A stretch of 64,000 nt of DNA from Macrostomum lignano. Taxonomy: Eukaryota. The stretch lies in the NCBI GenBank assembly GCA_002269645.1, contig NIVC01000186.1, positions 124,001 through 188,000 of the forward strand. Reading direction: 5' to 3'. Positions 19,196 through 59,560 of this stretch are shown here, piece after piece. Below the pieces are notes generated by a model that made no database searches, was not told the DNA's origin, and worked only from the letters and a program-made list of their open reading frames with translations. How positions within the stretch are numbered: the first letter of the stretch is position 1; each line of letters begins with the position of its first letter. A program made the position numbers and the translations under genes.

Positions 19196-19226
<31 letters not shown>

Positions 19227-19295
19227 GCTAGCTAACTAACTAACTAGCTAACTAACTAACTAACTAACTAGCTAGCTAGCTAACTAACTAACTAG

Positions 19296-19337
<42 letters not shown>

Positions 19338-19432
19338 GACTGACTAACTAACTGACTAACTAACTGACTAACTAACTAACTAACTTACTAACTAGCTAGC
19401 TAACAAACAAGCAAACAAACAAACAAACAAAC

Positions 19433-19467
<35 letters not shown>

Positions 19468-19520
19468 CTAACTAACTAACAAACAAACAAACAAACAAAC
19501 AAACAAACAAACAAACAAAC

Positions 19521-19588
<68 letters not shown>

Positions 19589-19724
19589 AAACAAACTAAC
19601 TAACTAACTAACTAACAAACAAACAAACAAACAAACAAACTAACTAACTAACTAACAAACTAACTAACTAACTAACTATCTAACTAACTAACTAACAAAC
19701 TAACAAACAAACAAACAAACAAAC

Positions 19725-19808
<84 letters not shown>

Positions 19809-19843
19809 AAACAAACTAACTAACTAACTAACTAACTAACAAA
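18988..19843. repeat. (ACTA)n/(AACA)n compound microsatellite
   Basis: Direct reading of the sequence. Confidence 0.97.
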
Positions 19844-20644
19844 GTATAACGAAAGCGTTCAGACAATACTTGCGTAAATCGACTAACCCTAACCCCGAAC
19901 TTGAGTCCCAAACAGGACATTATCTGTGATTAGAGGGAGATAAAGAAGCGTAAAAATGCATTCTTTTCTACATTAATCGTCAAGTCAGCACGATTGTCGA
20001 AATGCTGTGACTCATTGGGGAATCGCTGAAATATCAAGGCTCAAAGGAGTTGCTCAAGAAGTTGCTTTCTTTGCTGCCTTCCCAAGGGGGGGGCAAAGAT
20101 TGCTAGTCAGCACGAAATGCGAAAACTTTGTAGTTTGAAATTTTGGGCATGTGAATTTCGAGCTTTAGAAATTTTAGGTTGGCGAAATCCCCACATGTTT
20201 CATTTAGTAAGCAGTATAGCTTATTTATTAAATAGAAAGATCATGTATATGTGTGCACTATATGCTGATACTGGCATGAATAAAACCGGCATGCCAGGCA
20301 TTCAGCAATTGTTCAGAGACTCGAGCTATTATAGTCTTGTACGCGTGTACTCTCTACTTACTATTTCAACTCGAACTCCTCAACTACACAAGGGAGACTT
20401 CTTTACAAAATTCAGCGCTCGATCGATTAGCGATCTGTTGAAAAGCGTCGTTTAGTCAGTCTATCATTCAGCGAGTATGCAGAGCTCAAAAACACTGTCC
20501 ATAGCTTGAGAGTTGATTCAGTCAGGCAGTAAAGAATGGAGTAAAAAACTAATGGGGTTTTTATAAATGGCTACGAAGAAGCCTTACTGAGAAGCTCAGG
20601 CTAGTGGCAAGTTATTATACATGTAGAAACTAAGTGTCTGGAAG

Positions 20645-21868
20645 GACAACCAACTGCACAGACAACCAACTGCACAGACAACCAACTGCACAGACAACCA
20701 ACTGCACAGACAACCAACTGCACAGACAACCAACTGCACAGACAACCAACTGCACAGACAACCAACTGCACAGACAACCAACTGCACAGACAACCAACTG
20801 CACAGACAACCAACTGCACAGACAACCAACTGCACAGACAACCAACTGCACAGACAACCAACTGCACAGACAACCAACTGCACAGACAACCAACTGCACA
20901 GACAACCAACTGCACAGACAACCAACTGCACAGACAACCAACTGCACAGACAACCAACTGCACAGACAACCAACTGCACAGACAACCAACTGCACAGACA
21001 ACCAACTGCACAGACAACCAACTGCACAGACAACCAACTGCACAGACAACCAACTGCACAGACAACCAACTGCACAGACAACCAACTGCACAGACAACCA
21101 ACTGCACAGACAACCAACTGCACAGACAACCAACTGCACAGACAACCAACTGCACAGACAACCAACTGCACAGACAACCAACTGCACAGACAACCAACTG
21201 CACAGACAACCAACTGCACAGACAACCAACTGCACAGACAACCAACTGCACAGACAACCAACTGCACAGACAACCAACTGCACAGACAATCAACTGCACA
21301 GACAACCAACTGCACAGACAACCAACTGCACAGACAACCAACTGCACAGACAACCAACTGCACAGACAACCAACTGCACAGACAACCAACTGCACAGACA
21401 ATCAACTGCACAGACAACCAACTGCACAGACAACCAACTGCACAGACAATCAACTGCACAGACAACCAACTGCACAGACAACCAACTGCACAGACAACCA
21501 ACTGCACAGACAACCAACTGCACAGACAACCAACTGCACAGACAACCAACTGCACAGACAATCAACTGCACAGACAACCAACTGCACAGACAACCAACTG
21601 CACAGACAATCAACTGCACAGACAACCAACTGCACAGACAATCAACTGCACAGACAACCAACTGCACAGACAACCAACTGCACAGACAACCAACTGCACA
21701 GACAACCAACTGCACAGACAATCAACTGCACAGACAACCAACTGCACAGACAACCAACTGCACAGACAATCAACTGCACAGACAACCAACTGCACAGACA
21801 ATCAACTGCACAGACAACCAACTGCACAGACAACCAACTGCACAGACAACCAACTGCACAGACAACCA
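20645..21868. repeat. 16-bp minisatellite (CACAGACAACCAACTG)n, ~76 copies
   Basis: Near-perfect unit with an occasional ACC>ATC variant; generates the artefactual ORFs at 20596-21869. Confidence 0.97.
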
Positions 21869-21890
21869 CCTGAAAGAGAAGTCAGCATCA

Positions 21891-22379
21891 ATGCCGGTGC
21901 CAAGAAGCTTCATCACCTCTCACATATGGCTGAGCCGACACAAACGCGACCAGCTCAGCCCCGGCCTGGACTTGCGGCTGTCGGCTGCAGCTATCAGCCT
22001 GGGCATCTGCCTGTTCGCCATGTTCTGCGGTGGTCTCTTCGTGGTGCTGGCGGCTGCGGACCGCAACGGCAACGGTTTCAGCGTGGCGGAGGTGAATTTG
22101 CAAGCGGTGCGAGTGGCAGGTTACTGCCTGCTCGGCGGAGGCAGCGCTGGCGCAATCTTCTTCGGGCTGAGCTGGATGGCGCTGGTTCGAATGGCGCACT
22201 GCCAAATCCGCGACCAGGAGCATGAGATGGCCAGGAATTGTTATAAGTTTCCAGAAAACCACAACCGAAACGGCGGTACCATGGATGCAGTGGTTGCCAA
22301 TAGCGCTATTTGGCACGGGAATGGTGAGCAAAGGACTCAACAGCTCCCCCCGGTCAGTGAGGAACGGTTGGTGCTTTGA
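21891..22379 (+). CDS. Probable small protein (162 aa from this ATG) with two transmembrane helices; unknown family
   Basis: GC-rich coding-like sequence directly after the minisatellite, with two hydrophobic segments (LSAAAISLGICLFAMFCGGLFVVLAAA; VAGYCLLGGGSAGAIFFGLSWMALV). The true start could be in an upstream exon. Confidence 0.55.
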   Translation: MPVPRSFITSHIWLSRHKRDQLSPGLDLRLSAAAISLGICLFAMFCGGLFVVLAAADRNGNGFSVAEVNLQAVRVAGYCLLGGGSAGAIFFGLSWMALVRMAHCQIRDQEHEMARNCYKFPENHNRNGGTMDAVVANSAIWHGNGEQRTQQLPPVSEERLVL

Positions 22380-22779
22380 GGGCTGGTTAAAAATGTGTAC
22401 GAGACTTATATTATGTATGATACGAGATTAGTTATCTTGTAACGGCCCTGTAATTGTCTCTGTTTCGTTCCATTCTGTTGCCTCACTGTCAATAGCTTAG
22501 AATTATCTCATCTTCTCTGCTCAAATTTATTAACGTGTAAATATATTGAACTTATTGTGGCTTTACCTTTCTTGAAGAAAATTTTTTTAGCGCGAATGTT
22601 GATCCCAGCCCCTTCGAATGAGCCTCCTCCCGTTTTATTACGAAACACACACCGCATTCTTCGAAGCGCGACAATTCAGAGGCGCAATCAATGGTTTATT
22701 CAGCGCACGTGGTTAATATTCAGTGTGACATGATGGATAGATTTGCTCTACTCAAGTAGCAGTATCGACTTGTTACGAT

Positions 22780-28751
<5,972 letters not shown>

Positions 28752-29316
28752 ACTGCACTGATTCGGTCGGGAAGACAGCTGAGGCCGCTTATCAACTCAA
28801 ATGTTTGCCCGCGCGTGACTTCCTGTTGGTCTCCCGAACTCTGATTCTCCTTCGATCCCAGTCCCCTGCCTTCAGGTTCTCGTCTCGCGGATGATGAATG
28901 GAATTCCCAGGGGTGGCAGAGGCCATTGGGGGGGATTGCTCACCGGTCTGGTTGCTGCTTGGGAGCTCGCGGAAGCACCAGAGAATGCTCAGCAGGATTA
29001 GGCACCGCCGCCTCTGCTGCCGTAGCTGCCGAGATGGCAGCCTCTTTGGGGCCTGCGATGCAGAAGAGTACAGGGGGGGGCGAGAATCGATTTTTTGTCC
29101 TGTGATAATTGGTTAATTTTCCTTCGGTGGTCAACAGCTGCTCCCAGTGTGCACTGAGAGCAGGTATTCAATTCTGATTTCTGTGCGCCAAGTCTAACCA
29201 ACGCGAGCGTGTTGTTTGGGACAGCTTCTTCTCTGACTCATAATTGGGCCACTTTGAGCAATTAACGCCCTTGAGGGCTAATTGTAGCCTGACTAGCTGG
29301 GGAGGGTCGGGTCCAT

Positions 29317-30076
29317 CACGGGAGGGTCTATCACGGGAGGGTCTATCACGGGAGGGTCTATCGCGGGAGGGTCTATCACGGGAGGGTCTATCTCGGGAGG
29401 GTCTATCACGGGAGGGTCTATCACGGGAGGGTCTATCATGGGAGGGTCTATCACGGGAGGGTCTATCACGGGAGGGTCTATCATGGGAGGGTCTATCACG
29501 GGAGGGTCTATCATGGGAGGGTCTATCACGGGAGGGTCTATCTCGGGAGGGTCTATCATGGGAGGGTCTATCACGGGAGGGTCTATCACGGGAGGGTGTA
29601 TCATTGGAGGGTCTATCATGGGAGGGTCTATCACGGGAGGGTCTATCACGGGAGGGTCTATCACAGGAGGGTCTATCATGGGAGGGTCTATCACAGGATG
29701 GTCTATCACGGGAGGGTCGATCACGGGAGGGTCGATCACGGGAGGGTCTATCATGGGAGGGTCTATCATGGGAGGGTCTATCACGGGAGGGTCTATCATG
29801 GGAGGGTCTATCACGGGAGGGTCTATCACGGGAGGGTCTATCACGGGAGGGTCTATCACGGGAGGGTCTATCACGGGAGGTTCTATCACGGGAGGGTCTA
29901 TCACGGGAGGGTCTATCACGGGAGGGTCTATCACGGGAGGGTCTATCACGGGAGGGTCTATCACGGGAGGGTCTATCACGGGAGGGTCTATCACGGGAGG
30001 GTCTATCATGGGAGGGTCTATCATGGGAGGGTCTATCACGGGAGGGTCTATCACGGGAGGGTCTATCACGGGAGGG
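29317..30076. repeat. 15-bp minisatellite (GGGAGGGTCTATCAC)n, ~50 copies
   Basis: Direct reading; explains the five repetitive ORFs at 29168-30199. Confidence 0.96.
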
Positions 30077-30107
30077 TCTTTCAAAATAGTCACTATTGAT
30101 TGACGTG

Positions 30108-30428
30108 TAATAATAATAATAATAATAATAATTTATTACACCTACCCTAATGGCCAGATGTGCAACCGACAGCTCAGCCGCAGCTATTGCGCGGCGCATC
30201 TGAAGGCTGCGTACGGCTGTTCAGTCCAAGGACTGGGGGTCGCCACACACACTCTCAATTACCCCCCAGCTAATGCTGGCACCCATTTTACAGCTGGGTG
30301 ATCTGAAGCAATGCAGAGTTTAAAAGTGTCTTGCTTAAGGACACAAATTGTTCTCAGTGGAATCGGGAATCGAACCCCCGACCTTCAAGTCGTGAGTCCG
30401 ACACTCTAACTAATAGGCTACAACCTAG
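30108..30428 (-). mobile_element. tRNA-derived SINE with (ATT)n tail
   Basis: Minus strand: TAGCCTATTAGTTAGAG (A-box-like), GGTTCGATTCCC (B box), body with GCAAGACACT and CACCCAGCTGTAAAATGGGT, ending AATAAATT(ATT)n at 30108. Confidence 0.75.
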
Positions 30429-30917
30429 TGTGCTTAGCCTAGTTGACGTGTTGACGTGTACTCACAGCTGACTCGAACAGGGCCACTCTAAATACGAATA
30501 ATGGAAACCGGGGGAGTTCTCTGCAGGATTTTCGGTCTGCGGCCCGCCCCATCTCTGATTGAATTTCCCCACTGTGGGTCCAGCCTGCCGGAATCTGCAT
30601 TGCAAATGACGCCCCGGCGCAGTCTCCTAAGATGGAGCTATGCATGCAGAGATTGGAGAGGAGAGAAAATATTTTCATATTTTGACCGACAGCTAGTTGT
30701 TTGCCTATTTTAAGAAAATTTATTGGCCTGCGAAAGCCACTGTACTTAAGTTAACATTTCCACTTTCTTGTGAGGCTATGATATCAGCAAGAGTAATCGC
30801 GTATCCGTTGGAACAGGTAAATATAATTGTGAAATCAAACTCTGCGATCGGGTTTCGCGTAAACATAGAGATCGGATGAAGAAGGTGACGCCAAAGAGAT
30901 AGAGAGAAATATATGAG

Positions 30918-32452
30918 ACAGAGAGGGGACAGAGGGGACATAGAGGGGACAGAGGGGACAGAGGGGACATAGAGGGGACAGAGGGGACAGAGGGGACATA
31001 GAGGGGACAGAGGGGACAGAGGGGACATAGAGGGGACAGAGGGGACAGAGGGGACATAGAGGGGACAGAGGGGACATAGAGGGGACAGAGGGGACAGAGA
31101 GGGGGACAGAGGGGACATAGAGGGGACAGAGGGGACAGAGGGGACAGAGAGGGGACAGAGAGGGGGACAGAGGGGACAGAGAGGGGACAGAGAGGGGACA
31201 GAGAGGGGGACAGAGGGGACAGAGAGGGGACAGAGGGGACAGAGAGGGGACAGAGGGGACAGAGGGGACAGAGGGGGGACAGAGAGGGGACAGAGAGGGG
31301 ACAGAGAGGGGACAGAGGGGACAGAGGGGACAGAGAGGGGACAGAGAGGGGGACAGAGGGGACAGAGAGGGGACAGAGAGGGGGACAGAGGGGACAGAGA
31401 GGGGACAGAGGGGACAGAGAGGGGACGGAGAGGGGACAGAGAGGGGACAGAGGGGGCAGAGGGGACAGAGAGGGGACAGGGGACATAGAGGGGACAGAGG
31501 GACATAGAGGGGACATAGGGGACAGAGAGGGGACAGAGAGGGGACAGAGGGGACATAGGGGACAGAGGGACATAGAGGGGACATAGGGGACAGAGAGGGG
31601 ACAGAGAGGGGACAGAGAGGGGACAGAGAGGGGACAGAGGGGACAGAGAGGGGGACAGAGGGGATAGAGGGGACAGAGAGGGGACAGAGGGGACAGAGGG
31701 GACAGAGAGGGGATAGAGGGGACAGAGAGGGGATAGAGGGGACAGAGAGGGGACAGAGGGGACAGAGGGGACAGAGAGGGGATAGAGGGGACAGAGAGGG
31801 GACAGAGGGGACAGAGGGGACAGAGAGGGGATAGAGGGGACAGAGAGGGGACAGAGGGGACAGAGGGGACAGAGAGGGGACAGAGGGGACAGAGAGGGGA
31901 CAGAGGGGACATAGAGTGGACATAGGGGACAGAGAGGGGACAGAGAGGGGACAGAGGGGACATAGAGGGGACAGAGGGACATAGAGGGGACATAGGGGAC
32001 AGAGAGGGGACAGAGAGGGGACAGAGAGGGGACAGAGAGGGGACAGAGGGGACAGAGAGGGGGACAGAGGGGACAGAGAGGGGACAGAGGGGACAGAGAG
32101 GGGACAGAGAGGGGACAGAGGGGACAGAGGGGACAGAGAGGGGATAGAGGGGACAGAGAGGGGACAGAGGGGACAGAGGGGACAGAGAGGGGGGACAGAG
32201 GGAACAGAGAGGGGGACAGAGGGGACAGAGAGGGAACAGAGAGGGGGACAGAGGGGACAGAGGGGACACAGAGGGAACAGAGAGGGGGACAGAGGGGACA
32301 GAGAGGGAACAGAGAGGGGGACAGAGGGACAGAGGGGACACAGAGGGAACAGAGAGGGGGACAGAGGGGACAGAGGGGGCAGAGGGGACAGAGGGGACAG
32401 AGGGGACAGAGAGGGAACAGAGAGGGGGACAGAGGGGACAGAGGGGGAACAG
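30918..32452. repeat. Purine-rich (GAGGGGACA/GAGAGGGGACA)n low-complexity satellite
   Basis: 10-13 bp variant units; the plus strand is almost all A/G. Confidence 0.95.
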
Positions 32453-32979
32453 AGATCAGCCGCATAGAGAGAGATAGATCTGTAGCTCGTAGTGTTTAAA
32501 GCAGTGCTCAAAGCGGGCACTCACCCATGTCGCTAGGGACCAGTGCAATAAAGGTCTCCATATCGGGCAGCAGGCCGCTTTCGTTCATACGCTTTAAAAA
32601 TAATAATTTCTGCCTCAATTCTGTTGCAGGATAATTTGATTCCGGTTGGTATGCTTGACAGCTACTTGTTGAAAACACAGCTGACCCTGCCTCAACCCGC
32701 TCCCTTCTCGTTTGGTTAAGGCGGGGCAGCATTTATCTGCATCAAAGCCGGGCCCCAGCTTCCTCCATCTCAATCAGCGATGGCCTCAGCCGGAGTGGGG
32801 CAGCGAAAAGGGAGAGGACGGACGGGACGCCAGCCAATCCCAAACCGTATGGGGCTCTTATTTTGGGATGCGTGAAATCCAGCGATTTTAGTGTGCAAAT
32901 ACTGCCTACCGCACACAACTGAGTATACTGGATGGCTCTACTTGCACACCAAATGAAAGCGCACATGTTCTTCATTCTG

Positions 32980-33212
32980 CAGCTGTCACCCCATCTAATC
33001 TGTAGCTGTCACTCCATCTATTCTGCAGCTGTCACCCCATCTATCCTGTAGCTGTCACCCCATCTATCCTGTAGCTGTCACTCCATCTATCCTGTAGCTG
33101 TCACTCCATCTATCCTGTAGCTGTCACTCCATCTATCCTGTAGCTGTCACCCCATCTATCCTGTAGCTGTCACCCCATCTATCCTGTAGCTGTCACCCCA
33201 TCTATCCTGTAG
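32980..33212. repeat. 23-bp tandem repeat (CTGTCACCCCATCTATCCTGTAG)n, ~10 copies
   Basis: Direct reading of the sequence. Confidence 0.9.
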
Positions 33213-34114
33213 CCTTATCGCGCTCGTTCGCAGCTTATTTTCTCCCTCCACAGCCCGGGTCGATTGCCTGAATAAAAAAGAGAAATCGAAAAAGCGTAGG
33301 AAAGGCTGGCGGCCTCTTTTCCCAGAACTTTTTTGCACAGAAAATCAAACGAAAAGATTTTGAAGAGCTGATGTGCCTGAGGAGAGAGAGAGAGAGGGTG
33401 AGAGATGGAGGCAAGGAAAAGAAGGAGGGCTTGAGCAGAAATCGCCAAGGACCTCCATATCATTCCTAATCGAACCGAAGAAGTACTTGGCTCGGAACAG
33501 GCTCATGTTTAAGAAGGACACTTTGGTGCGGAAAAGCGGGATTACAGCCTGCCAGCAAGACAGCTGGCTTAGAAAAACTCGCTCTCTGACACGAAGACCA
33601 AAAAGAATATGATAGATAAAGTCAGTAGCGGGTGATAAACTTTTAGAAGGGATTTATTTTTATGCAGAGTTCCTTCCCCTGAATCTTAGCTGCCGGTTTT
33701 TGACCCTGAACTGACTGGGACGCAATGTGCGTTCAGCGGCAAACCAACTAACAACCTAATTTACGTACTGCGCTGGTAATATCAGATAGTATTGGGGCTG
33801 ACCCACATGTACGAATGGACACTATAGCAATATCCCCCATACTGCACTTCCAGTATAGCAGCGCAGGGATAAGCCCTAGCGCTGGGAAGTAATTTGATTG
33901 CGAGATGGAAGAGGCGGGGATGTAAGGAGAAATAGGGGGGAAGGAGTGTGGAGTGTGTGTGCGTGGGTGTGTGACCGGAGGAGACCACCGAGAAGACAGA
34001 AGAGTCTGAGAAACATAAATCACAATAAAAAATAAAAGTCTTTACCGGAAACAGAGGAAGAGATGAAAGTCCGAATAAGAGAGAAACAGACAAAAATTGA
34101 GAATAGACACGAGA

Positions 34115-34350
34115 GTGAGAGACAGACAGACAGGAAAGAGTGAGAGACAGACAGGAAAGAGTGAGAGACAGACAGGAAAGAGTGAGAGACAGACAGGAAA
34201 GAGTGAGAGACAGACAGGAAAGAGTGAGAGACAGACAGGAAAGAGTGGGAAGCAGACAGGAAAGAGTGAGAGACAGACAGGAAAGAGTGAGAGACAGACA
34301 GGAAAGAGTGAGAGACAGACAGGAAAGAGTGGGAAGCATGCAGACAGGAA
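34115..34350. repeat. 21-bp tandem repeat (GAGTGAGAGACAGACAGGAAA)n
   Basis: Direct reading of the sequence. Confidence 0.92.
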
Positions 34351-34734
34351 AAGTCAATGCAGTGATGCCGAATAGGGAGTCTGACTTGCAAGAATTTTTT
34401 ACAGTAATGATAAATCTTCGAGAGAAAAGGCAACAAAGAAGAATTTCAATCTATCGTTAACGTTTTATCGTTCTACAGTCTAAATTATTTGCATCGATTT
34501 GCTTGCCACATTTGGAGAAGACAAATTGCCCCGACCGAATTTGGGCCGCACTGTAAGACTGGTGCGGGTCGTAAATCATTCCGAGTCTCCCAGAGGCAGC
34601 CACATGGAAGAGAATGGTTCTTTTATGAGACATGACGCATTTCGTAGGCAGGCGATAAAAAGCACGGCTTTGGCTTGTTCTGTTAGTTCCATGGTCCTCG
34701 ACCCCTTGCCTGGGTTTTCAAAGAGATGATAGGT

Positions 34735-35500
34735 GAGAGATAGGAGAGATTAGGACAGGGAGAGCTGGGAGATAGGAGAGACAAAAGAGCTGGTAGGAAT
34801 AGGACAGACAGAGCTGGTAGGAATAGGACAGACAGAGCTGGGAGAGATAAGACAGACACAGCTGGGAGGGATAAGACAGACACAACTGGGAGGGATAGGA
34901 CAGGCAGAGCTGGGAGAGATAAGACAGACACAGCTGGGAGGGATAAGACAGACACAACTGGGAGGGATAGGACAGACACAGCTGGGAGGGATAAGACAGA
35001 CACAGCTGGGAGGGATAAGACAGACACAGCTGGGAGGGATAAGACAGACACAGCTGGGAGAGATAAGACAGACAACTGGGAGGGATAGGACAGACACAGC
35101 TGGGAGGGATAAGACAGACACAGCTGGGAGAGATAAGACAGACACAACTGGGAGGGATAGGACAGGCAGAGCTGGGAGAGATAAGACAGACACAGCTGGG
35201 ATGGATAAGACAGACACAACTGGGAGGGATAGGACAGACACAGCTGGGAGGGATAAGACAGACACAACTGGGAGGGATAGGACAGGCAGAGCTGGGAGAG
35301 ATAAGACAGACACAGCTGGGAGGGATAAGACAGACACAACTGGGAGGGATAGGACAGACACAGCTGGGAGGGATAAGACAGACACAACTGGGAGGGATAG
35401 GACAGGCAGAGCTGGGAGAGATAAGACAGACACAGCTGGGAGGGATAAGAGAGACACAGCTGGGAGGGATAGGACAGGCAGAGCTGGGAGAGATAGGAGA
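34735..35500. repeat. 24-bp tandem repeat (GGGAGGGATAAGACAGACACAGCT)n with variant units
   Basis: Direct reading of the sequence. Confidence 0.93.
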
Positions 35501-36550: not shown

Positions 36551-39500
36551 CTACCGGGCATAGGGCTTCATCAGCACCAGGGCCTCGTGACAGTTCAACG
36601 CTTTCAAGGACTCGCCAAGCCTCTTCAGCGTCAGCACCTTGAATCTCTTGGCCGCCTCTTCCAACACCTTCAGCGTAGCATCGTGGTCGGTAAGATTGTC
36701 CACGAGGATGTCCTCCTCCAGCGTCTCGGGAAGCTCCAGCGCTTGACGGAGACGCGTCCAGGAGCTGCTCAGCTGGGGACACGCGGCCAGCTGGCTGAGC
36801 AAACCTGTGGGATGAAGTTGAGCAAGCGATTGGTGAGTAATGGACTGCCGATAACATGACAGCTTTGCTGAGGGCCTGGGAGCTCGGCAAATGAGGATCT
36901 GGGAAGCTGGCCCAGCAACTGAGGATCTGGGAAGCTGGCCCAGCAACTGAGCATTTGGGAAGCTGGCCCAGCAACTGAGGATCTGGGAGGCTGGCCCAGC
37001 AACTGACACTCTGGGAGGGTGGCCCAGCAACTGAGCATTTGGGAAGCTGGCCCAGCAACTGAGGATCTGGGAGGCTGGCCCAGCAACTGAGGGTCTAGGA
37101 GGCTGGCCCAGCACCTGACACTCTGGGAGGGTGGCCCAGCAACTGAGCATCTGGGAGGCTGGCCCAATAACTGAGGATCTGAGAGGCTGGCTCAACAACT
37201 GAGGATCTGAGAGGCTGGCCCAGCAACTGAGGATCTGGGAGGCTGGCCCAACAACTGAGGATCTGAGAGGCTGACCTGACTTAGGAACTATGACAGGGTT
37301 TGGCAGGGGAAGCAGAAGCCCCAAGCCCGGAACTGACCGCCAGGCTGCATCGGCACGGGCTCCTCGGGCAGCTGCAGGTCGAACAGCGGGCTGAGCTGCA
37401 CGCTCTCGCCAGACTTCAAGCGGTGCCGGTACACGTTGCCCAGCACCTTACCGATGGACACGGTCGGCTGGATGCCGCTGCCGCACTGCCCGCTGGATAC
37501 GGTGCCGGTGCCGGAGTCCAGCCGCTGGACCAGTCTGCCACCGCCACCGCCGTCGAAGATGTTGACAACGCCCGGCTGCTGCGGCAGCGGCTGGCAGTGG
37601 CTCTGCACAATGTTGCGCTCCCGAGCAAGCGCAGCCGCGGCGCTGCTGCCCGAATGCTGACGCTGCCACGACTCGGCGATGTCGCCGAACGTCGGCCGCT
37701 CCTCAGGATTCAGCGCCAGCATGGAGGTCATCGCCTCGGTTAGGCTGGCGCGAAGCTTGTCGAACTCCGACACGGGAGACTGCAGAGAGGCCTGCGAAGG
37801 ACAAATAGAATTAGCACCGCTGCATGGTCAGCACCTACTGAACCTCAGCTGCACCATAAACACTCACTCATTAGTGACCTCAGCTGCACCATAAACACAC
37901 CCTCAGTAGTGACCTCAGCTGCACCATAAACACACCCTCAGTAGTGACCTCAGCTGCACGATAAACACACCCTCAGTAGTGACCTCAGCTGCACAATAAA
38001 CACTCACTCATTAGTGACCTCAGCTGCACCATAAACACTCCCTCATTAGTGACCTTAGCTGCACCATAAACACTCCCTCATTAGTGACCTCAGTTGCACC
38101 TACTCCCTCATTAGTGATGTTAATGATGTTAACATGCTTTTTATGCTAATGGCAGTTAAGAATGTTATTAACGATTCCCACCACTGATGAAGCTTAAAGG
38201 CATCACACCGCACAATAGCAGCCAGACGCACCGGGTATTGCTGAAAGCATTCGGTCTCCAGCATAGCGGCCAATCGGCCAGGCAGTTGACCATTCAACAC
38301 CATCTGCTTGTACTCGGGTATGCCTAGCCCGGAGATTCGCTGTCTGAGGCTGGCACAGATCAGGGACTCGCACAGGCACACGCCGAACAGGAAGCGATCG
38401 ATGTACACATCCGGCTGGCGCAGCGGGTCCAGCAGCAGTTCCGGTGGCCGGCGCTCGATGCCAATCCGCTGCTCAAGATCCAGGGTGTTCTGCGACACCA
38501 GCGAGTTGAGACTCTTTGATAGGCCGAAATCGCTTAGCTGTGGAAATGGCAACGCAGTATTGAGGAAGTATTTCTTTGGGGAGCAATTGAAGGTCATATT
38601 GACAGTTTCACAAGGGTGTACACAAGGGTGTACAGCGGCCCTGACTTTCATAAGGCCTGTACACTCACTGTGCCTTGACTTGCTACCCAACCTGCAAACT
38701 AACTATTCCTACCTTGGCCCTAAAGTCGCCAGTAATCAGCACATTATCGATAGCCAAATCCTTGTGCAACACGGGCGGCTCCTGTTCATCTTGCAGACAG
38801 CGCATTGCTTGGCAGACGTCCAGCATGAAGGATTGGACCAGCCAGGGGAATCTGCTGGTCTCCAGGCCCTGACAGGTAGGAGGGCGAGCGGGATACTCGG
38901 TTTCAAAAAATGAACTGATGGATCTACGGGTTGGTTTAATACTTGGGTTGGTGTGTACAGCTAGGGATTGTGTACAGCCAGGGATTGGTGTGTACAGCTA
39001 CGGACTGATGTGTACAGCTAGGGATTGATGTGTACAGCTAGGGATTGATCTGTACAGCTAGGGATTGGTGTGTGTGTACAGCTAGGGAATGGTGTTTACA
39101 GCTAGGGATTGATGTGCACAGCTAGGGATTGATGTGTACAGCTAGGGATTGGTGGGCACAGCTAGGGATTGAGGTGTACAGCTAGGGATTGATGTATACA
39201 CCTAGGGATTGGTGGGCACAGCTAGGGATTGAGGTGTACAGCTAGGGATTGATGATGTGTACAGCTAGGGATTGGTGTGTGTACAGCTAGGGATTGATCT
39301 GTACAGCTAGGGATTGATCTGTACAGCTAGGGATTGATCTGTACAGCTAGGGGTTGATCTGTACAGCTAGGGATTGATGTGTACAGCTAGGGATTGATGT
39401 GTACAGCTAGGGATTGATCTGTACAGCTAGGGATTGATGTGTACAGCTAGGGATTGATCTGTACAGCTAGGGATTGATGTGTACATCTAGGGATTGATCT

Positions 39501-40599
39501 GTACAGCTAGGGATTGATGTGTACATCTAGGGATTGATCTGTACAGCTAGGGATTGGTGTGTGTGTGTGTACAGCTAGGGATTGGTGTGTACAGCTAGGG
39601 ATTGATGTGCTGTGCACAGCTAGGGATTGATGTGCACAGCTAGGGATTGATGTGTACAGCTAGGGATTGATGTGTACAGCTAGGGATTGGTGTGTACAGC
39701 CAGGGATTGGTGTGTACAGCCAGGGATTAGTGTGTACAGCCAAGGATTGGTGTGTACAGCAAGGGATTGGTGTGTACAGCTAGGGATTGATGTGTACAGC
39801 TAGGGATTGGTGTGTGTACAGCCAGGGATTGATGTATACAGCTAGGGATTGATCTGTACAGCTAGGGATTGATCTGTACAGCTAGGGATTGATGTGTACA
39901 GCCAGGGATTGGTGTGTACAGCCAGGGATTGGTGTGTACAGCAAGGGATTGATGTGTGCAGCTAGGGATTGGTGGGCACAGCTAGGGATTGAGGTGTACA
40001 GCTAGGGATTGATGATGTGTACAGCTAGGGATTGATGATGTGTACAGATAGGATTGATGGACACTCCAGTGCACCAACTTACCGCCCGACTAAATCTATT
40101 AAGAAAGTTTCTGAGATCGCCAAAATCGCAGTGCTCCATCAGGTAGCCATTAAAAATATTGTTGCAGATGTACAGGCCGTGTACTTTTACAATATGACGC
40201 GACTGATCGCTCAGCTTTTTTAGCAAAGTGATCTCTTTTTGAAGCTTTTTCAGAGCCCTGCAGGTAGAACAGTTTGTCATGAGGCCTCCATATAGATATT
40301 GCAATTGTCAACTGAAATTCTGGATAGTGGCGAAAGCTTCCAAACTTACCAAACCTTGTCTGCAGACTCGGTGGTATTTCTAAGCATTTTGATGACACAA
40401 TGAATGCCCTGCCATTTGCATGAGTAAATATCCCCAAATGAACCACGAGCTAAAATTAATAAACAGAATAATGTTAATAAAGGTAAGTGTTAGTTCAAAT
40501 TTGCAGGAAAATTTAACTCAATTGCTTGCCTAAAAATTCCTTTTCAGAAACTTGTTCGTCAGTGACAAAGGAGAGCTTTGATTCCTGTGCTGCAGCCAT
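36551..40599 (-). CDS. 504-aa TKL-type protein kinase with a C-terminal death-domain-like region (RIPK1-like architecture), 7 exons
   Basis: Exons 40599-40530 (GC donor), 40449-40350, 40257-40083, 38868-38713, 38537-38232, 37791-37338 and 36804-36551 join in frame (1515 nt). Motifs: LARGSFGDIY, CVIK, QKEI, EPPVLHKDLAIDNVLITGDFRAKLSDFGLS, PPE, FGVCLCE, LNPEERPTF. The C-terminus SWTRLRQALELPETLEEDILVDNLTDHDATLKVLEEAAKRFKVLTLKRLGESLKALNCHEALVLM follows the death-fold pattern. Confidence 0.8.
36895..37272. repeat. 28-bp tandem repeat (CTGGGAAGCTGGCCCAGCAACTGAGGAT)n in the last intron of the kinase gene
   Basis: Direct reading; 28-aa periodicity in the ORF track. Confidence 0.92.
37838..38115. 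repeat. ~35-bp tandem repeat (AGTGACCTCAGCTGCACCATAAACACTCACTCATT)n, intronic
   Basis: About 8 copies by direct reading. Confidence 0.9.
38948..40055. repeat. 20-bp tandem repeat (GTGTACAGCTAGGGATTGAT)n, intronic
   Basis: About 54 copies by direct reading. Confidence 0.95.
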
Positions 40600-41300
40600 T
40601 GCAATTGCTCTGAAATTGATAAAAATAACAATAATAATATTTTTTCCACACTAGATATAGATTGCATTAAACTTTGGATAAACATTTATAGCCATAGTTT
40701 GGTTAGCTAATTATCGAATCATTCAGATAGTTGCTGCACATCTTTTACAAATTAATATTATTCAAAACAGAATAGGCATACCTAGTTGCAACAAATCTTA
40801 CAAAAAAGTTCCAAGACAGATGTACAAAATTGGCTATCCTTTATTGGCCAATACCCTTCTTATGTTGTCTTTGAAAGTTATTTAGGAATAAAAAACAAAT
40901 GTCTTGGCTAAAAGCTAGATATAACAACATCTCCTTAGCCTAGGTATAGAAGGTGCTAAATTGCAAATTTAATATTAATAACATCAGGGACTCCTGGGTG
41001 CACATTTTGCTTAAGGAGCCCAGCAAAGCAGACCTAGAAGGTCAGTCATACACTATTCTCAATCTGGCCCTTGAGGTAAAAAGTTTGCTGACCTTTGCAC
41101 TAAAAGCATTAGGCTTAGACATATTAGATAAAAACTATAGTAGAATGGGATTGAGAACAACATGAACTATTATATTAGCTAATACCCTTAGCTTCCAAGA
41201 CTCAATAAAGCCAAAGCTGAAAACTAGCCAACACTTGTTTAAAATTCAAAAAGGGCATTTGGAAGATCATGCTAAAAAGTAGGTAGTTCCAATCCAACAC

Positions 41301-46091: not shown

Positions 46092-46853
46092 TCATTGGAG
46101 CACGAACTTTACCCAGTCGACGCTGTTCTCGATCTCCTGCTCAACCTGAGCATCGCTGAACTGAAGCAGTCGGCATCGGCCAAGAGCTTTGTTGTACAGC
46201 ACGCTCCTGGTATTTGAGACCTGGCCCAGTGCAGCGGAGAAGCACTCAAAAACAGTGGTAATCTTGTGCAGCTCGGTGTAGCAGTATTGACTATTGTACT
46301 CAGTGCGTTTGAAGGGCACTTGCACCCAGATGGTGCTGGACGGCACTTGAGACGGAGCAAATTCGCAGGCGAATCCGACGGTGTTAGACAGGCATTTGTA
46401 GTCGATAAGCCTATTTACATCATTATTTGACTTCATGGTGCAGTCCTGATTCCCATAGTTGTTCGGCATCCCGCCCAACCACAGCGTGTTGTCCAGCGGC
46501 AGAATCCCGTTGCCGTTGACCGTCTGCCAACCCGACCGAGAATTTTTTCGCTCATTAGGGAGGTCGGTCACTCCGAGCCAAAAGTTGCCTACGCTGTACA
46601 TGCTCGGCATGCTGCTGAGTAGTTTCAGCGTTTCGTACGAGTTGATGAGCTCGCCTCCGATCGCTGCGCACCGACGGTTGGCCTCGCACCAGTTGATGAC
46701 GCTTGTAGAGTTCACGAAGATGCACTTGCCAGCCTCGATGCTGAATGGGGCAGGGCACACGGCTTGCTGCTGGGATAAGCCAGCTTGTATGAGCAGCACT
46801 ACTACAAGGACAGTCAGTTTCTGGTTTACTCGAAATTCGAATTCAGCTTTCAT
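46092..46853 (-). CDS. Secreted C-type lectin domain protein with a C-terminal PAN/apple-like Cys region (253 aa, single exon)
   Basis: Hydrophobic leader LTVLVVVLLIQAGLS; CP..F...GKC, WCEANRRCAAIGGEL, FWLG, W..GMPNN..GNQDC, CL..GFACE; second module CY..TVFECF..YNKALGRCRLL. Confidence 0.85.
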   Translation of the reverse strand: MKAEFEFRVNQKLTVLVVVLLIQAGLSQQQAVCPAPFSIEAGKCIFVNSTSVINWCEANRRCAAIGGELINSYETLKLLSSMPSMYSVGNFWLGVTDLPNERKNSRSGWQTVNGNGILPLDNTLWLGGMPNNYGNQDCTMKSNNDVNRLIDYKCLSNTVGFACEFAPSQVPSSTIWVQVPFKRTEYNSQYCYTELHKITTVFECFSAALGQVSNTRSVLYNKALGRCRLLQFSDAQVEQEIENSVDWVKFVLQ

Positions 46854-50685: not shown

Positions 50686-51663
50686 TTATCGAGCCGGACA
50701 GAACTTCGTGGCCAGGCGGTCTCGGACAGATGCGTTGAAAGCCACGGTGAGGCAGGGCACCGCGGCCGAGTTGATGTAGAATACAACGTACAGGCAGTAC
50801 TCCTGATGCAAGCCTGCCACATTATCCAGCGTCATGGGCACCAGACTGAGCAGCTGGATGAGGTTTCCAATGGCTAGACCGGCCAAGGACAAGCGTAGAG
50901 CTCGCCGATCGCCGCCGCCACCGTCGGACTTTTCGGCGCGGCGCGCCGCCAGGGTGACGCCGGTGGCAACGTAGGCGATGGCGGAAGTCGTGTACAGCAC
51001 GATGGCGATGCCGGCCTTTATGAGAGCGTTCGCGCTTGACTGGGCGCGGATGTGATCGCAGGCAGCTTGAAGCGTGTCAGCCTGAGCTAAACCCAGCCAT
51101 CGCCACACCTGCATACCCAGTTCGGCTGCAGCCATGATCGCCAGGACACTGCAAGCCAGGCCAATGGCGGGCTTGCGGCTCCAGACGCGGCTGGTCGGCG
51201 CGGCCACGGCCAGCAGCCGGTCGATGGCCAGCAGGCTGTAGGCGAAAATCTCCGCCCCGACGGTGACGTCGCGCAGGCTGACAAGCACGGTGAGGAAGCT
51301 CGGCCGCCGAGTCTCTATCGGGTTCTCCAGCTCGCTGGTCCACGCGGCGTCCACCGCGGCCGAGCCGTGCAGCCGGTTGTGCCGGCCGACGCCGAGGCGG
51401 AACAGCAGCAGGAGGAGCACCAGGGCCGCGAGCAGCTCGCAGCCGCTTAGCAGCAAAGTGAGACTGCGGTAGGTGGCCCGCCGAATGGCGCCGTTCCTGC
51501 CAGCGACCAGGCCCACCACGGCGCAGTTGCCCAGCACGGCCAGGCAGGCTATAATCGAGTAAGCTATGAAGAAGCACGGACTGCTCAGTTGAGTCTGGAA
51601 GCTTTCGTTTGAGAACTCTGGACACCCGTCTGCTTCGATTGTGCTGTTGGTTACGTTAGACAT
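50686..51663 (-). CDS. Orphan rhodopsin-like (class A) GPCR, 325 aa, intronless
   Basis: N-glycosylation-rich N-terminus (NVT, NST, NES), TM1 LAVLGN, TM2 LSGCELL, TM3 LLAIDRLLAV (DRY-like), about 7 hydrophobic segments. Confidence 0.8.
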   Translation of the reverse strand: MSNVTNSTIEADGCPEFSNESFQTQLSSPCFFIAYSIIACLAVLGNCAVVGLVAGRNGAIRRATYRSLTLLLSGCELLAALVLLLLLFRLGVGRHNRLHGSAAVDAAWTSELENPIETRRPSFLTVLVSLRDVTVGAEIFAYSLLAIDRLLAVAAPTSRVWSRKPAIGLACSVLAIMAAAELGMQVWRWLGLAQADTLQAACDHIRAQSSANALIKAGIAIVLYTTSAIAYVATGVTLAARRAEKSDGGGGDRRALRLSLAGLAIGNLIQLLSLVPMTLDNVAGLHQEYCLYVVFYINSAAVPCLTVAFNASVRDRLATKFCPAR

Positions 51664-54888: not shown

Positions 54889-57399
54889 CTGAAATTGGTG
54901 ATGCATAATTCGTTTATAAGTACCTGGAAGTACAAAAGTGCGCTTTAAATACTATACTTGAAGAAATACTTGAAGTCCTAACCTGATGAGAGACACTTAC
55001 TAGAGCTTTACAAATGAATTAGGCCAGTATACTGAAATAAAGGAGTAACTCTCAGGAAATCTAATGCACTTGAAAGTAAAGTCATATCGAGCGGCAGCAA
55101 TGGCTATGGGTAGCTTAGCTAGAAACGGTGAGATCTACCATTTTGCGTTCAATGACCACTCAAGACATTAATAGGTACTTCAAATGCTATTGGGCCTTTA
55201 CTAACACTTGAAATCACCAGAAAGGTACTTTCAGTTGGCAAAAAGACGTCAAAGGTGCAAGGCATGGATGAAGGAATACAATGGTCTGTATATTCATACA
55301 ATACATTGAGCCACTGATTGATAGTATGTATTGAGATAGTTGTACGAGATATGTAAACCTAGACGTGTCACCTTGAAACCAGATTTTTATATTGAGCTAT
55401 TAAGTTGTCATTGGAGCAGATATACACTGCATGCGATGATTTGGTCGTAGCTCGTACACTATACAAAAACTCAATCCGAGAAAAAATTTCAACGATGATC
55501 GTAAAACAATCCGACTGAGTAAAATTCAGCTTCAAATTTAACCTGGCTAGGAGGAGAAACAAGCCGAGGGACAGAATTTCACTCCTGGTCTTGAATATAA
55601 CGTAACTTTCTTGAGATTCTTTTCTGTAGCCAAACTATCCAAGCACCAAAAACCATGTTAGAGATCTTGAATTCGCTTACGCCTTTATTTGCAAACAAGA
55701 CTATGAGGATGTCTATGGCCAAAAGACTATTCTTAGTTGGCCAGATAGGAAAAAGACCATAGACAATAATATTTGACAAGCGTTGAAGTCCTAGCTCGTG
55801 GTACGTATAAGATATTCTATGGGTTTGAGGTCGGTATTTCACTTAAATCCCGAGAGCCGAATATCTTATTTAAACTACTTTAATTTTGCGGGATGTATTC
55901 AGATAAATCCCGGAGCCATACTTGTATGCCTATGGTTGAAGTTGGGGATGGGGGGGGGGGGCGCCCCCCCCCCACATTCTTACCATAGACAAAATTTCAT
56001 TAAGAAATTTCTCGAGTCACGAAGGAACAGAAGAGAGAAGCTCGCTTATTTAGATACATACAATAATCCTTGCAATATGTCAGGGAAAGTGATCGATTAA
56101 ATCCCGCAAAATAAAATCTACGTGACAATAACCTCCCTGAAAGTGAGCTTTAAAGTGGTTTAAAAAATGTAACAATCAGCCTTATTTGTTGCGGGCAGAA
56201 AAGGAAGCTGCCAAATGTCAATGGCAATAATATAGCATAACTAATTCAGTGAAAAGTCTGCGTTAAAACCCGCCGAGGGTGTCTGTAATGAATCCTTATC
56301 CTTGATTTATGAATAAGTTTCTCGGGAAATATCGAGTTAGCAACTGGTTTAGCTCGTTTCGGCCTCTGTAGCCAAATCAATTATATTGTTATTTCACATG
56401 TAATAAAGAAAATCGTAAAGAAAAACGCAGATTTTGCATCGCTAACTCACCGCCATGTTTTACAGTAACAAACACCATTTTGTGACGCCTTATTAGTGCT
56501 TGTTAATCATATAGGCAAAGAAACGAATCTTCCAAAAGAATAGCACTGGGAGCAGGCAGTTTATCTGTCCAAGTGAGCTCATTTTTATAGAATTATATAG
56601 GCAGTAAAGCGAAATACCCAATCTAAGGAGAACACATAAGAGCAACTCTCTAGCTATAGCTGCTGAGCACTCATTATAGATTCATCTCAAGCAGCGAGAC
56701 AGAGATAGAGAGACAGAGAGAGAGACAATCACAGTGAGTGAATCGCAGAGAAAGCTGTGTATGCTGCTTCCATTACAAAAGAACAGAGCCAGCAGGCTCA
56801 CGTCAGCTATTTAGGACACAATTCTCCGCTAACAGTTGAACAGCGCACTCTCCCTCTCAGCCTCATCCAACAGAGTGAGACTATACTCAACAGCCCTCCC
56901 CTCAACTTAGCTGCCGTTGGTTACTCCTACTCTTTTCAATACGTAGGCATGAGCTCATAAAGCATAAAACTTTAACTCTCTTCCATATACTTCCAAGCAT
57001 CGTATAGCGCACTAGTGCTACTAATAATACATAAAATGAATGACAGGTCAAATGTGAAGATTTAGACTAGTGCATATGACACCATATGCATGTAGTTCTA
57101 TAGTTCACATCTTGAGCAGCTGAAGTGTGGGCCCAAGAGAGGAAGCGAATTGAGAATAGCTATACATGTAGAATGGCTTTGCTACCTAGACAGCTAAAGT
57201 AGAAGAGGGGATCAGGGAGGTCAATGAGGGGGAAGCAATGAGAGGAAGATCAATGAGAGGGAGATCACTGAGAGGGAGATCATTGATCTCCCTCTCAGTG
57301 ATTCGGATTGTAATCTCCCTCTTAGCTGCAGGATGGTCCGTAGACACAGTGGGGAAGCGAGGTCGCCCATTCCGATAGCCCCTGAACCCCACAAACAGG

Positions 57400-59560
57400 C
57401 AGAGGCGTGAGGCCGGTCAGGGTGGTCCGCCGGTCCTGCTGCGTGATCTTCCGTAGGGAAGAAAGTGGCTCGTCTTGTCTGTCAGACCTCGTCAATAGAC
57501 GGGTTCGGCCCGAGGTAGCGTAGTCGGTCTCTGGTTAAAGAAAGGGCAGTGGCAGACAAAGTATTGAGCATCTTCGTTGTCGTATTCGCAAAGAGGGCAA
57601 ATTTCACAGAGAGAGCATTGCATCAAGCGTTTCCCCTGGGTTATTCGTGGACGTGCCGTCGGTGCGTTTTACCGAGGAAAGCTTAGACATTTTGTCCAGA
57701 GTAGGTGCTTTCAAAATTCTGGAGGTGGGGTGTGAGCCCTCTAGCTCCTCGCAGTAATGGCGCCATTTTTTAGCTTTAGCGTTCTTCCTAAACTGCCCTT
57801 TTAACTCATGGATTTCCTCATGGTAGGTGGTTTAGTCCGCAAGGCTCTTGGTTTTAGTTGCTATGTGTGGAGTCTCTTGGCTCTGCAACGGAGGTTGCCG
57901 AGCTCGGGATTCTACCACAGCGCAGATTTTTCCCTTTATCGGCTTTTAAAGGGCAGGATGCCTCAAAGGCTACGGTTAGCGGTTCTGTCAGCACAGTCCG
58001 CACTCATCCGCTTCTTGACTTGAGGTGATCGTGGATGCCCGAAGACTGATGTAACTCCTTAAGGGCGAGCCTATCCCAAAGCCTAAAGGTATCTCAAAGC
58101 CTAAAGGTATCCCAAAGCCTAAAGGTATCCCAAAGCCTAAAGGTGTCCCAAAGCCTAAAGGTATCCCAAAGTCTAAAGGCATCCCAAAGTCTAAAGGCAT
58201 CCCAAAGCCTAAAGGTATCCCAAAGCCTAAAGGTATCCCAAAGCCTAAAGGTATCCCAAAGCCTAAAGGTATCCCAAAGCCTAAAGGTATCCCAAAGCCT
58301 AAAGGTATCCCAAAGCCTAAAAGTATCCAAAAGCCTAAAGGTATCCCAAAGCCTAAAGGTATTCCAATCAGTGTTTCTGGCGTTCCGTCTCCACGTGATG
58401 CGATTCGCGCTGCGCGCTGCCATCAGATTGAAGGAGATGAACTTGTGATCGGAGAGGGAGGACACCGGAAGCACCCGCCACGCCCCCAGTGCTTTGTAAG
58501 AGCCTGGGTGTTAGGCTTTGCAATCTCCGTGTGTTTGCGTTTGGTGACTTTAAGTAATTGATCTTTACCCATGCAGTCTTTGACTTACTCTGCCTATCAA
58601 TAGCTATTTTATTGGCTGACCGTGGTCGTTAGAAGCTGTATTTTTTGTTAATTAAAATATACACGCAAAAATTGTCTTGGAATTGTTGCCAATTTGGTAT
58701 TTATTGTTTTTTGCTTTGAAAATGATGAACTGACAAATCGCTCTGTGACCCGCGGACATCACAATCCGGAAATCGCAAAGCAAATCTTAGTTTTTCGACC
58801 GGATATTTGAACCTGCATGTGACTTGATCTGGGGGGACTGCAACAAGTACCCCTTGACAAAGCAAAGCAGCTTGAGATATCCGGGGGAGATCAGAGGCAC
58901 TTGCAACTTCTAGGAGGAGATCAGAAAGCACTTGCAATTTCCGGGGGGGGAGATCAGAAAGTACTTGCGTACTATCTGGGTAGGCCGGATAACATATAAG
59001 GCACGGATATCCCAAAGTACCATCGTATAACACCGGCAACCATGAGCTCGTAGTTTTTAGCCGAGCAAAGCTCGACCAGCGTAGAGATTGAGGGTTCTGG
59101 GGACGACCGCTGATTCACCAGGAGGCTGGCGTCACTCGCATCGACTTGACCAACGAGGAGGAGGGGCAAATCAGCCTCCCAGAGCCTGCATCTTTGCGGC
59201 CAAAACGCTTAGCGCGTGGCTCAAATCGAGCCTGTCTAACAGGGACATCTGCGTCATCCAATCTGAGGACCTTTCCTGAGAAGACCACCCTCATTGCCTC
59301 GATTTAGTTATAGCAGGCGATACAGACTCGGATCGACCAGTCGGTCAACGCCTCCCCGCATGCTCAGGTAGTAGACGGGGTTCACTTTCCTCAATGAACT
59401 GACGGTCCAGGTCCAGGCTAGGTCCAGGCTAGTTTCTATACAACCTGGCCTTCTGGCTGTTAAAGGTGGAGCGAGAGCAGACCGGCTCAAGATGCACCAG
59501 GAGGCGATCCTGGCCTGGTCTGCGGTTGCGCGGTTGCCGGATGCAGCAGCGCTAATTGCC
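57400..59560 (-). mobile_element. Degenerate, internally deleted non-LTR retrotransposon (R1/LOA/Tad-like)
   Basis: Minus strand: end of the APE endonuclease SDHKFISFNL..RITWRRNARNTDWNTF (~58470-58360), then W.NPELGNLRCRAKRL and WRHYCEELEG..SRILK..DGTSTNNPGETLDAML (~57950-57610), joined directly to the C-terminal CPLCEYDNEDAQYFVCHCP (~57605-57545). The RT core is absent. Confidence 0.65.
58073..58362. repeat. 18-bp tandem repeat (CCCAAAGCCTAAAGGTAT)n, ~16 copies, inside the LINE relic
   Basis: Direct reading of the sequence. Confidence 0.93.

Follow-up and report, generated by a model that had tools for sequence, protein, structure and literature searches.

Kinases that carry a death domain (DD), among them RIPK1, IRAK/Pelle, and DAPK, are hubs in innate-immune and cell-death signaling. 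RIPK1 has an N-terminal kinase, a long low-complexity middle, and a C-terminal DD. In IRAK4 and Pelle, the DD through which the kinase is recruited into DD oligomers lies at the N-terminus. DAPK1 is a CAMK-group kinase of ~1430 amino acids (aa), in which the kinase and the DD are separated by a calmodulin-binding segment, ankyrin repeats, and ROC-COR. Reviews describe lophotrochozoan RIPK-like proteins as having no C-terminal interaction domain and treat the DD, CARD, and RHIM as vertebrate acquisitions (PMC10492769; PMC9573974). The sequence analyzed here is a 64,000-nucleotide stretch of Macrostomum lignano, a free-living flatworm (assembly GCA_002269645.1, contig NIVC01000186.1, positions 124,001 to 188,000), referred to as the window. 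On its minus strand, at 40599..36551, is a gene for a 504-aa protein with an N-terminal kinase, a linker, and a C-terminal module predicted to be a DD.

We consider it reasonably probable that this gene encodes a lineage-specific cytoplasmic signaling protein, with a kinase of the TKL/TK-like type at its N-terminus, a linker, and a C-terminal DD contained in a single exon, and that it is an architectural analog of RIPK1. The kinase-then-DD order, given by a Pfam kinase match and a modeled C-terminal DD, is that of RIPK1, as a first-pass annotation of the sequence had proposed. The long low-complexity middle and the HKD triplet of the catalytic loop are also common to the two proteins. The window protein differs from RIPK1 in being shorter, in its catalytic loop (DLAIDN vs DLKPEN), in its linker (VSIG vs IQIG), and in its kinase, which falls outside the RIPK cluster. 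It is, therefore, RIPK1-like in architecture only, and orthology to RIPK1 is not demonstrated. IRAK4 and Pelle have their DD at the opposite end. DAPK1 resembles the window protein in having its kinase N-terminal to the DD, but a Pfam scan of the 504-aa protein found a kinase domain only and no calmodulin-binding region, ankyrin repeats, or ROC-COR.

Gene structure and the predicted death domain

Splice-site testing on the reverse complement of the window joined seven exons in frame into 504 codons followed by TAG, reproducing the first-pass gene model. All of the exons are on the minus strand. Exon 1 (40530..40599) starts with the ATG at 40599-40597, encodes residues 1-23 plus one nucleotide, and ends in a GC donor (AG|GCAAGC), making intron 1 a GC-AG intron; the other five of the six introns are GT-AG. 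Exon 2 (40350..40449), bounded by the acceptor ttttag| and the donor TG|gtaagt, contains the glycine-rich loop (ARGSFGDIY) and the VAIK-type Lys (K44, in CVIKM). The alphaC Glu (LQKEITLL) and the hinge (YLMEHCDFGDL) are in exon 3 (40083..40257), and the catalytic loop (LHKDLAIDN, with D152 and N157) is in exon 4 (38713..38868). Exon 5 (38232..38537; donor CCG|gtgcgt) provides the DFG motif (SDFGLS) and the C-lobe, as well as an atypical activation segment whose last residues are ERRPPE. Exon 6 (37338..37791) completes the kinase (to ~37660; NPEERPTF) and contains the whole G/S/Q-rich linker (residues 314-420; 37659-37339). Finally, exon 7 (36551..36804) encodes the whole module with the predicted DD fold (residues 421-504) and the TAG stop at 36553-36551. 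Every motif quoted in the first-pass annotation was found in this product: EPPVLHKDL...ITGDFRAK|LSDFGLS, which runs across the exon 4/5 junction, WTRLRQALEL, and LTLKRLGESLKALNCHEA. The introns had been described as filled with minisatellites. Tandem Repeats Finder detected such arrays in intron 3 (38948..40059; 20-bp unit, 54 copies), intron 5 (37842..38100; 35-bp unit, 7.4 copies), and intron 6 (36887..37273; 28-bp unit, 13.8 copies), but introns 1, 2, and 4, which are 80-175 bp long, contain none.

A homology search with the spliced product yielded a single cluster, 99% identical, "Protein kinase domain-containing protein" from M. lignano. Its six members are three UniProt entries and the three GenBank proteins BOX15_Mlig029749g1-g3. 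The spliced product is the same, residue for residue, as A0A1I8HXU4 (UniRef, 504 aa) and PAA88455.1 (BOX15_Mlig029749g1; 500 aa, 5'-partial), and the remaining copies in the cluster differ from it at 2-5 positions. The gene is one of three near-identical genomic copies in M. lignano. The GenBank annotation of assembly Mlig_3_7 was made from genome-guided RNA-seq and transcriptome assemblies (PMC5730564) and, thus, the identical GenBank protein gives the splice junctions independent transcript-level support. This includes the junction that joins the last exon to the kinase exons. The gene is real and expressed, and it has been annotated yet left unnamed, as a kinase or hypothetical protein. No entry for it in GenBank or UniProt mentions a DD. 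The earlier description of the gene as invisible as a single open reading frame (ORF) is correct in that no prokaryote-style ORF covers it, but it was already present in both databases as an unnamed kinase.

Alternative splice choices were also considered. A 508-aa model, which uses a GT donor located 12 nt further downstream (exon 1; FLGKQLT|RGSFG), was rejected since both deposited sets read EFLARGSFG, a sequence that requires the GC donor at intron 1. Other in-frame donor/acceptor pairs at intron 5 were rejected for their mismatch with the deposited proteins. Ten nucleotides upstream of the start codon (40600-40612, minus strand) there is an AG acceptor, tttcag|AGCAATTGCA, that precedes the ATG. 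Since trans-splicing affects ~39% of M. lignano genes (PMC5730564), the AG could be a spliced-leader acceptor. The GenBank proteins are marked 5'-partial.

The fold of the C-terminal module was predicted with the help of a paralog, A0A1I8JDI5 (P0007). This entry is a fused model of three kinase units, the last of which has the same order of parts as the window protein (kinase, ERERN, linker, and C-terminal module). The C-termini of the two proteins are homologous (23% identity; Smith-Waterman z 6; 0/2000 shuffles reach the real score). AlphaFold2 (AF2), run from a three-row alignment that included the paralog, returned a model with a predicted local distance difference test (pLDDT) score of 84.5 and a predicted template modeling (pTM) score of 0.78. 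The model has six helices, at residues 421-433, 436-442, 447-456, 460-473, 480-489, and 493-503. When it was compared with the PDB using Foldseek, the best 22 matches were all DDs, with TM scores of 0.54-0.65 save one at 0.46 and probabilities mostly of 0.85-1.0. These matches included the DDs of Pelle, FADD, ankyrin-G, p84, ankyrin-1, TNFR1, TRADD, ankyrin-B, and RIPK1. The best was the Pelle DD (1d2z; TM 0.64-0.65), and the RIPK1 DD matched with TM 0.60-0.64 (6ac5, 9v9e). PYD matches appeared only further down the list, with low probability.

Profile comparisons tended to point in the same direction. The C-terminus of P0007 aligned with Pfam Death over profile positions 9-84 of 86 (E 0.0028, 18.2 bits, which is below the 22.6-bit gathering score), and on its own it matched a profile of 13 DDs with E 2e-4. 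In hhalign, the two-family alignment matched eight human DDs with P 0.0011 (probability 20%, 67 columns), and W436 was placed on the helix-2 Trp in the expected register. The score was 22.8, compared to 10.3 +/- 2.1 (maximum 20.4) in 200 column shuffles (z ~6) and 16.6 in a reversed control. Each of the eight human DD sequences was verified against PDB chains at ~2.1 bits per residue. A comparison with 13 individual DDs in hhalign did not resolve the DD subfamily, as all the pairwise scores were weak and MyD88 was only nominally the best.

Several results weigh against calling this module a DD. Pfam Death (PF00531) did not match the C-terminus of the window protein at E<=10, and hhalign of this C-terminus alone against DDs was not significant. 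The Foldseek E-values were modest (0.17-1.3), which is usual for an 85-residue helical domain. The call depends on a model from a three-row alignment and on a paralog whose Death match is below the cut-off. AF2 run on the C-terminal 100 aa as a single sequence gave an unusable model (pLDDT 47). A PDB sequence search with the window C-terminus returned designed PPR repeats only, which were set aside as artifacts of summed weak repeat matches, and the same search with the C-terminus of the paralog gave nothing meaningful. A word-index homolog search with the C-terminal 122 aa had zero matches; it also missed the protein itself and, thus, reflects a limit of the method rather than evidence of absence.

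The missing Pfam match, the poor single-sequence model, and the PPR-only search result would fit another explanation, in which the module is a small bundle of helices unrelated to DDs, or two genes are wrongly fused in the seven-exon model. Two annotation sets, one of which is based on RNA-seq, give the identical 504/500-aa protein, and a diverged paralog keeps the same kinase-linker-module order. The alignment-based model is confident, and there are no CARDs, PYDs, DEDs, or generic bundles among its 22 best structural neighbors. This explanation is largely refuted and, in our judgment, highly improbable. Residues 421-504 very probably adopt a death fold, as the first-pass annotation had suggested from sequence patterns, judging by the six-helix model with its DD neighbors. 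The predicted DD corresponds exactly to exon 7, which follows a phase-1 intron, and this layout of one exon for one domain is compatible with exon shuffling.

The kinase domain and its relatives

Residues 24-313 matched the Pfam profiles PK_Tyr_Ser-Thr (E 1.5e-29) and Pkinase (E 5e-22), in agreement with the N-terminal kinase of the first-pass annotation. For comparison of individual residues, the domain was aligned with PDB-verified human RIPK1-3 and IRAK4 and with segments of FGFR3 and CSF1R taken from PDB matches. K44 (VAIK), E65 (alphaC), D152 (HRD), N157 (catalytic loop), and D170 (DFG) all aligned with the canonical residues of these kinases. The catalytic loop, HKDLAIDN, has Ala at D+2 and Asp at D+4 and contains neither the Lys of Ser/Thr kinases (D+2) nor the Arg of tyrosine kinases (D+4). 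The loops of the paralogs, HRDLAVDN and HRDLAADN, are without these two residues as well. The P+1/APE region (GIERRPPE) is degenerate, with Ile in place of the Thr of the GT motif and PPE in place of APE, and Ala replaces the first Gly of the glycine loop. Tyrosine-kinase hallmarks (HRDLAARN/HRDLRAAN; P-x-x-W-x-A-P-E) are absent, since the corresponding segments read DLAIDN and GIERRPPE and lack the Arg and the Trp. The catalytic activity of the protein appears uncertain because of this loop and the degenerate GT/APE region, and this is a further point against the proposed signaling role.

These substitutions raise the possibility of a pseudokinase or weakly active scaffold. In such a protein, the DD would bring an impaired kinase fold into a complex, and signaling would occur by conformation, as with MLKL or IRAK2/IRAK-M. 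The missing Lys and Arg of the catalytic loop and the changes in the glycine loop, GT motif, and APE motif are what would be expected, and the pseudokinase of MLKL was among the best PDB sequence matches. However, the window protein and its paralogs all keep the Lys of VAIK, the Glu of alphaC, the catalytic Asp, the Asn, and the Asp of DFG, a pattern that usually marks active kinases under selection. We consider a pseudokinase decidedly unlikely.

The sequence matches of the kinase in the PDB were CSF1R, FGFR3, BMX, MLKL, JAK2, FAK, and CTR1, all at ~1e-10, with the tyrosine kinases marginally best. Assigning a family from the best PDB match was dropped since these values do not discriminate. 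No RIPK was among the best 60 matches. Scored per domain against the window kinase, FGFR3 and CSF1R reached 43 bits each, human RIPK2, RIPK3, and RIPK1 reached 36, 28, and 23 bits, and IRAK4 had the lowest score of the references compared (15 bits).

A phmmer search of 1.84 billion representative proteins found, at E<=1e-30, only the protein itself and its paralog P0007. The ranking from this exhaustive search was redone by single-domain score, as full-sequence scores are inflated by proteins with multiple kinase domains. The nearest neighbors were then three M. lignano proteins: P0007 (134 bits), A0A1I8H5Q9/PAA48300 (P0012; 104 bits), and A0A1I8FW15 (P0008; 75 bits). These were followed by a plateau at 60-66 bits, where most of the proteins are unnamed TKL-type kinases of eukaryotes, drawn from metagenomes and amoebae. 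Two of the kinases at this level are spiralian and have a Pfam-positive Death domain at the C-terminus: KAL4234042 of Mactra antiquata (64 bits) and P0149 of Owenia fusiformis (60 bits).

The three M. lignano paralogs are 34-39% identical to the window kinase. The family has a common activation-segment signature, DFGLSK...QNTL.(L/F)E...G(I/V)ERR.PE...DPLRQPD...DR(F/Y)L(F/Y)G, together with the DLAxDN catalytic loop. In a rough neighbor-joining (NJ) tree of 194 columns and 100 bootstraps, a Macrostomum-only kinase clade had 98% bootstrap support, with no resolution of its sister group. Members of this clade differ at the C-terminus, where some have a DD and others have ankyrin repeats. P0008 is truncated and has no DD. 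The closest intact paralog, A0A1I8H5Q9/PAA48300.1 (P0012/P0156), has C-terminal ankyrin repeats in place of the DD, a layout that resembles RIPK4 and ANKK1 (kinase plus ankyrin repeats) and lies within the Macrostomum-specific clade. No paralog was found within the window, where tblastn gave the gene's own exons and one additional match. The latter, at 55256-55369 (minus strand), is a weak match to kinase residues 118-154 (E 0.098, 38% over 39 aa) with no exon-like neighbors and is probably due to chance.

The Owenia and Mactra proteins are among the closest known counterparts. Owenia P0149 (533 aa) and Mactra KAL4234042.1 (P0123, 1062 aa) are unnamed. In both, a kinase that is clearly RIPK-like stands at the N-terminus and a Pfam-positive Death domain at the C-terminus, with a RHIM-like core (NISNCNNVMVGSSNVMNV; PPNLQIGSNMVMNINNG) between them. 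In the Owenia protein, the RHIM-like core NVMVGSSNVMNV is followed by Death. In the Mactra protein, LQIGSNMVMNI is followed by Pfam Death at 1.3e-12. Their kinases score 98-132 bits against human RIPK1-3, and the two proteins appear to represent the full RIPK1 architecture in Spiralia. Like the window protein, they are spiralian and have the kinase-linker-DD order, and they are among its best kinase matches outside Macrostomum. In contrast, their RIPK-like kinases, HLDLKxxN loops, and RHIM-like cores (LQIG; VMVG then SxNVMN) have no equivalent in the window protein. When the comparison was reversed and made from annelid/mollusc RIPK-like kinases, the window protein ranked 94th-128th of ~160. 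Judged by these scores, it is not preferentially related to the Owenia and Mactra kinases.

Flatworm proteins are often long-branched, and the window protein could be a true but fast-evolving RIPK member. It would then descend from a lophotrochozoan RIPK1-like ancestor with a kinase, a RHIM, and a DD. The domain order is as in RIPK1, the Mactra and Owenia kinases are among the best matches outside Macrostomum, and P0012 pairs the same kinase type with ankyrin repeats, as do RIPK4 and ANKK1. However, human RIPK1-3 score below FGFR3 and CSF1R, the reversed ranking is low, the catalytic loop is DLAxDN and not DLKxxN, and the Macrostomum clade was joined with the RIPK-clade members (P0123+P0154) in only 2/100 NJ bootstraps. 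Furthermore, the DD-type and ankyrin-type paralogs cluster together, which points to domain shuffling within the lineage and not to two ancient architectures having been passed down. These comparisons do not support placing the kinase among the RIPKs and, allowing for the long branch and the crude tree method, we regard descent from a RIPK as unlikely. The kinship with RIP kinases in the first-pass annotation did not stand up. Its observation that the catalytic loop recalls these kinases holds for the HKD triplet, found also in RIPK1, but not for DLAIDN, which is unlike the DLKxxN of RIPKs. We favor a kinase of TKL/TK-like type that belongs to a Macrostomum-specific clade, as part of the explanation given at the outset.

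The linker and other features of the window

The linker is 107 aa long (residues 314-420) and contains 16 G, 12 S, and 11 Q, which bears out its earlier description as a G/S/Q-rich segment of ~100 aa. It is probably disordered. The linkers of the window protein and P0007 are dissimilar except for their ERERN start and two TVSxG units in each. In the window protein, one of these is TVSIG, within the motif PTVSIGKVLGNVY (37429..37467, minus strand; residues 378-390), and a half-repeat, GTVSSG, lies upstream at 37506-37489. TVSIG is the sole 5-mer common to the two linkers, and a shared 5-mer was seen in 1.7% of shuffles. Its position corresponds to the RHIM site in RIPK1.

In the RIPK-descent explanation, TVSIG would be a degenerate RHIM, and its retention between otherwise dissimilar linkers at the expected position (p ~0.017) is in favor of this. 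Against it, the RHIM core (I/V)Q(I/V/L/C)G has no match in the window protein, and the nearest sequence, the VSIG of TVSIG, is missing the core Q. Pfam RHIM did not match any of four linkers at E<=10, though this profile is also blind to the evident RHIM-like cores of the annelid and mollusc proteins and is, hence, uninformative. TVSIG as a RHIM-like motif is a lead only. A bolder proposal is that the Macrostomum kinase-DD family keeps the tripartite logic of RIPK1, namely a kinase, an amyloid-forming motif, and a DD, with TVS(I/L)G-x-V-x-G as a divergent, Q-less RHIM in an animal without FADD, CRADD, and MLKL. We think this very doubtful. If true, it would indicate, along with the Owenia and Mactra proteins, that the kinase-RHIM-DD module predates the protostome-deuterostome split, in conflict with the published view that the C-terminal interaction domains of RIPKs arose in vertebrates (PMC10492769).

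A strong internal donor, ATCG|GTAAGG, is present in exon 6 (37429-37433 region). It is in phase 1, the same as the annotated exon-6 donor, and is unused in the deposited models. Splicing from this GTAAGG to exon 7 would drop residues ~383-420 and cut within TVSIG, with the DD staying in frame.

Elsewhere in the window, two single-exon ORFs were noted on the minus strand, neither of which had a Pfam match at E<=0.01. The ORF at 46092-46853 (253 aa) has a hydrophobic segment at its N-terminus that looks like a signal, together with a cysteine/WIGL-type pattern like that of a C-type lectin-like domain. The ORF at 50686-51663 (325 aa) has ~7 hydrophobic segments, with a DRL motif after the third and NSxxxP in the last, and from these features it looks like a rhodopsin-type G protein-coupled receptor.

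The M. lignano genome has been described as rich in simple and tandem repeats (PMC5730564), and the many minisatellites of the window fit this description. Arrays of one G+C-rich satellite unit of 52-53 bp occupy 1326-3460 and 9431-12266 (40 and 54 copies). Near-identical repeats of 90-91 bp x 2.9 are located ~2.6 kb beyond each array, at 6098-6357 and 14832-15091. The paired arrays and repeats suggest a segmental duplication of ~8 kb. Dense, unrelated micro- and minisatellites fill 18985-35495 and 58072-62040: (AACT)n x 214, 16 bp x 77, 23 bp x 60, 15 bp x 52, 11/20 bp x 77-153, 24 bp x 30, 18 bp x 16, and 59 bp x 19.5. The repeats in these two regions give rise to long, spurious ORFs on either strand and, locally, to pronounced GC/AT skews.

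Candidate partners and significance

RIPK1 and IRAK/Pelle signaling follow the logic that we propose for the window protein. Through its DD, the protein would be drawn into DD oligomers that are seeded by a receptor or adaptor with a DD of its own, and platyhelminth TNF receptors with predicted DDs are the candidate upstream partners. Across the platyhelminths, M. lignano among them, TNF receptors are predicted to have DDs, and TNF ligands are also present in M. lignano (PMC7519573). Clustering, or induced proximity, may in turn switch on the kinase or make it available as a scaffold, and the output may be downstream stress, immune, or death signaling.

The classic DD adaptors are a difficulty for this scheme. 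Neither FADD nor CRADD was found in platyhelminths (PMC11463336), and within Protostomia, MLKL was reported only in rotifers (PMC11476962). The known RIPK1 partners FADD, TRADD/CRADD, and MLKL are reported absent from flatworms. Parasitic flatworm lineages are also reported to have lost DED caspases. An output of the FADD-caspase-8 or necroptosis type is, therefore, unlikely, and the necroptosis-like signaling raised in the first-pass annotation is speculative and unsupported. A caspase with a kinase-like pro-domain has been described in M. lignano (PMC11463336), and it merits comparison with the kinase clade of the window protein.

The published view that C-terminal interaction domains were vertebrate acquisitions is contradicted more directly by the Owenia and Mactra proteins than by the window gene. 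For the window gene, caution is needed, as the domain architecture points to RIPK1 and the kinase sequence does not. It is best read as a case of either convergent domain shuffling or extreme divergence. The gene reveals, in a free-living flatworm, a small group of orphan kinases whose predicted DD is cryptic, being invisible to Pfam and unannotated. This family is a concrete candidate for the step downstream of the predicted DD-bearing TNF receptors of platyhelminths, and the idea is testable since both RNA interference and transgenesis work in M. lignano.

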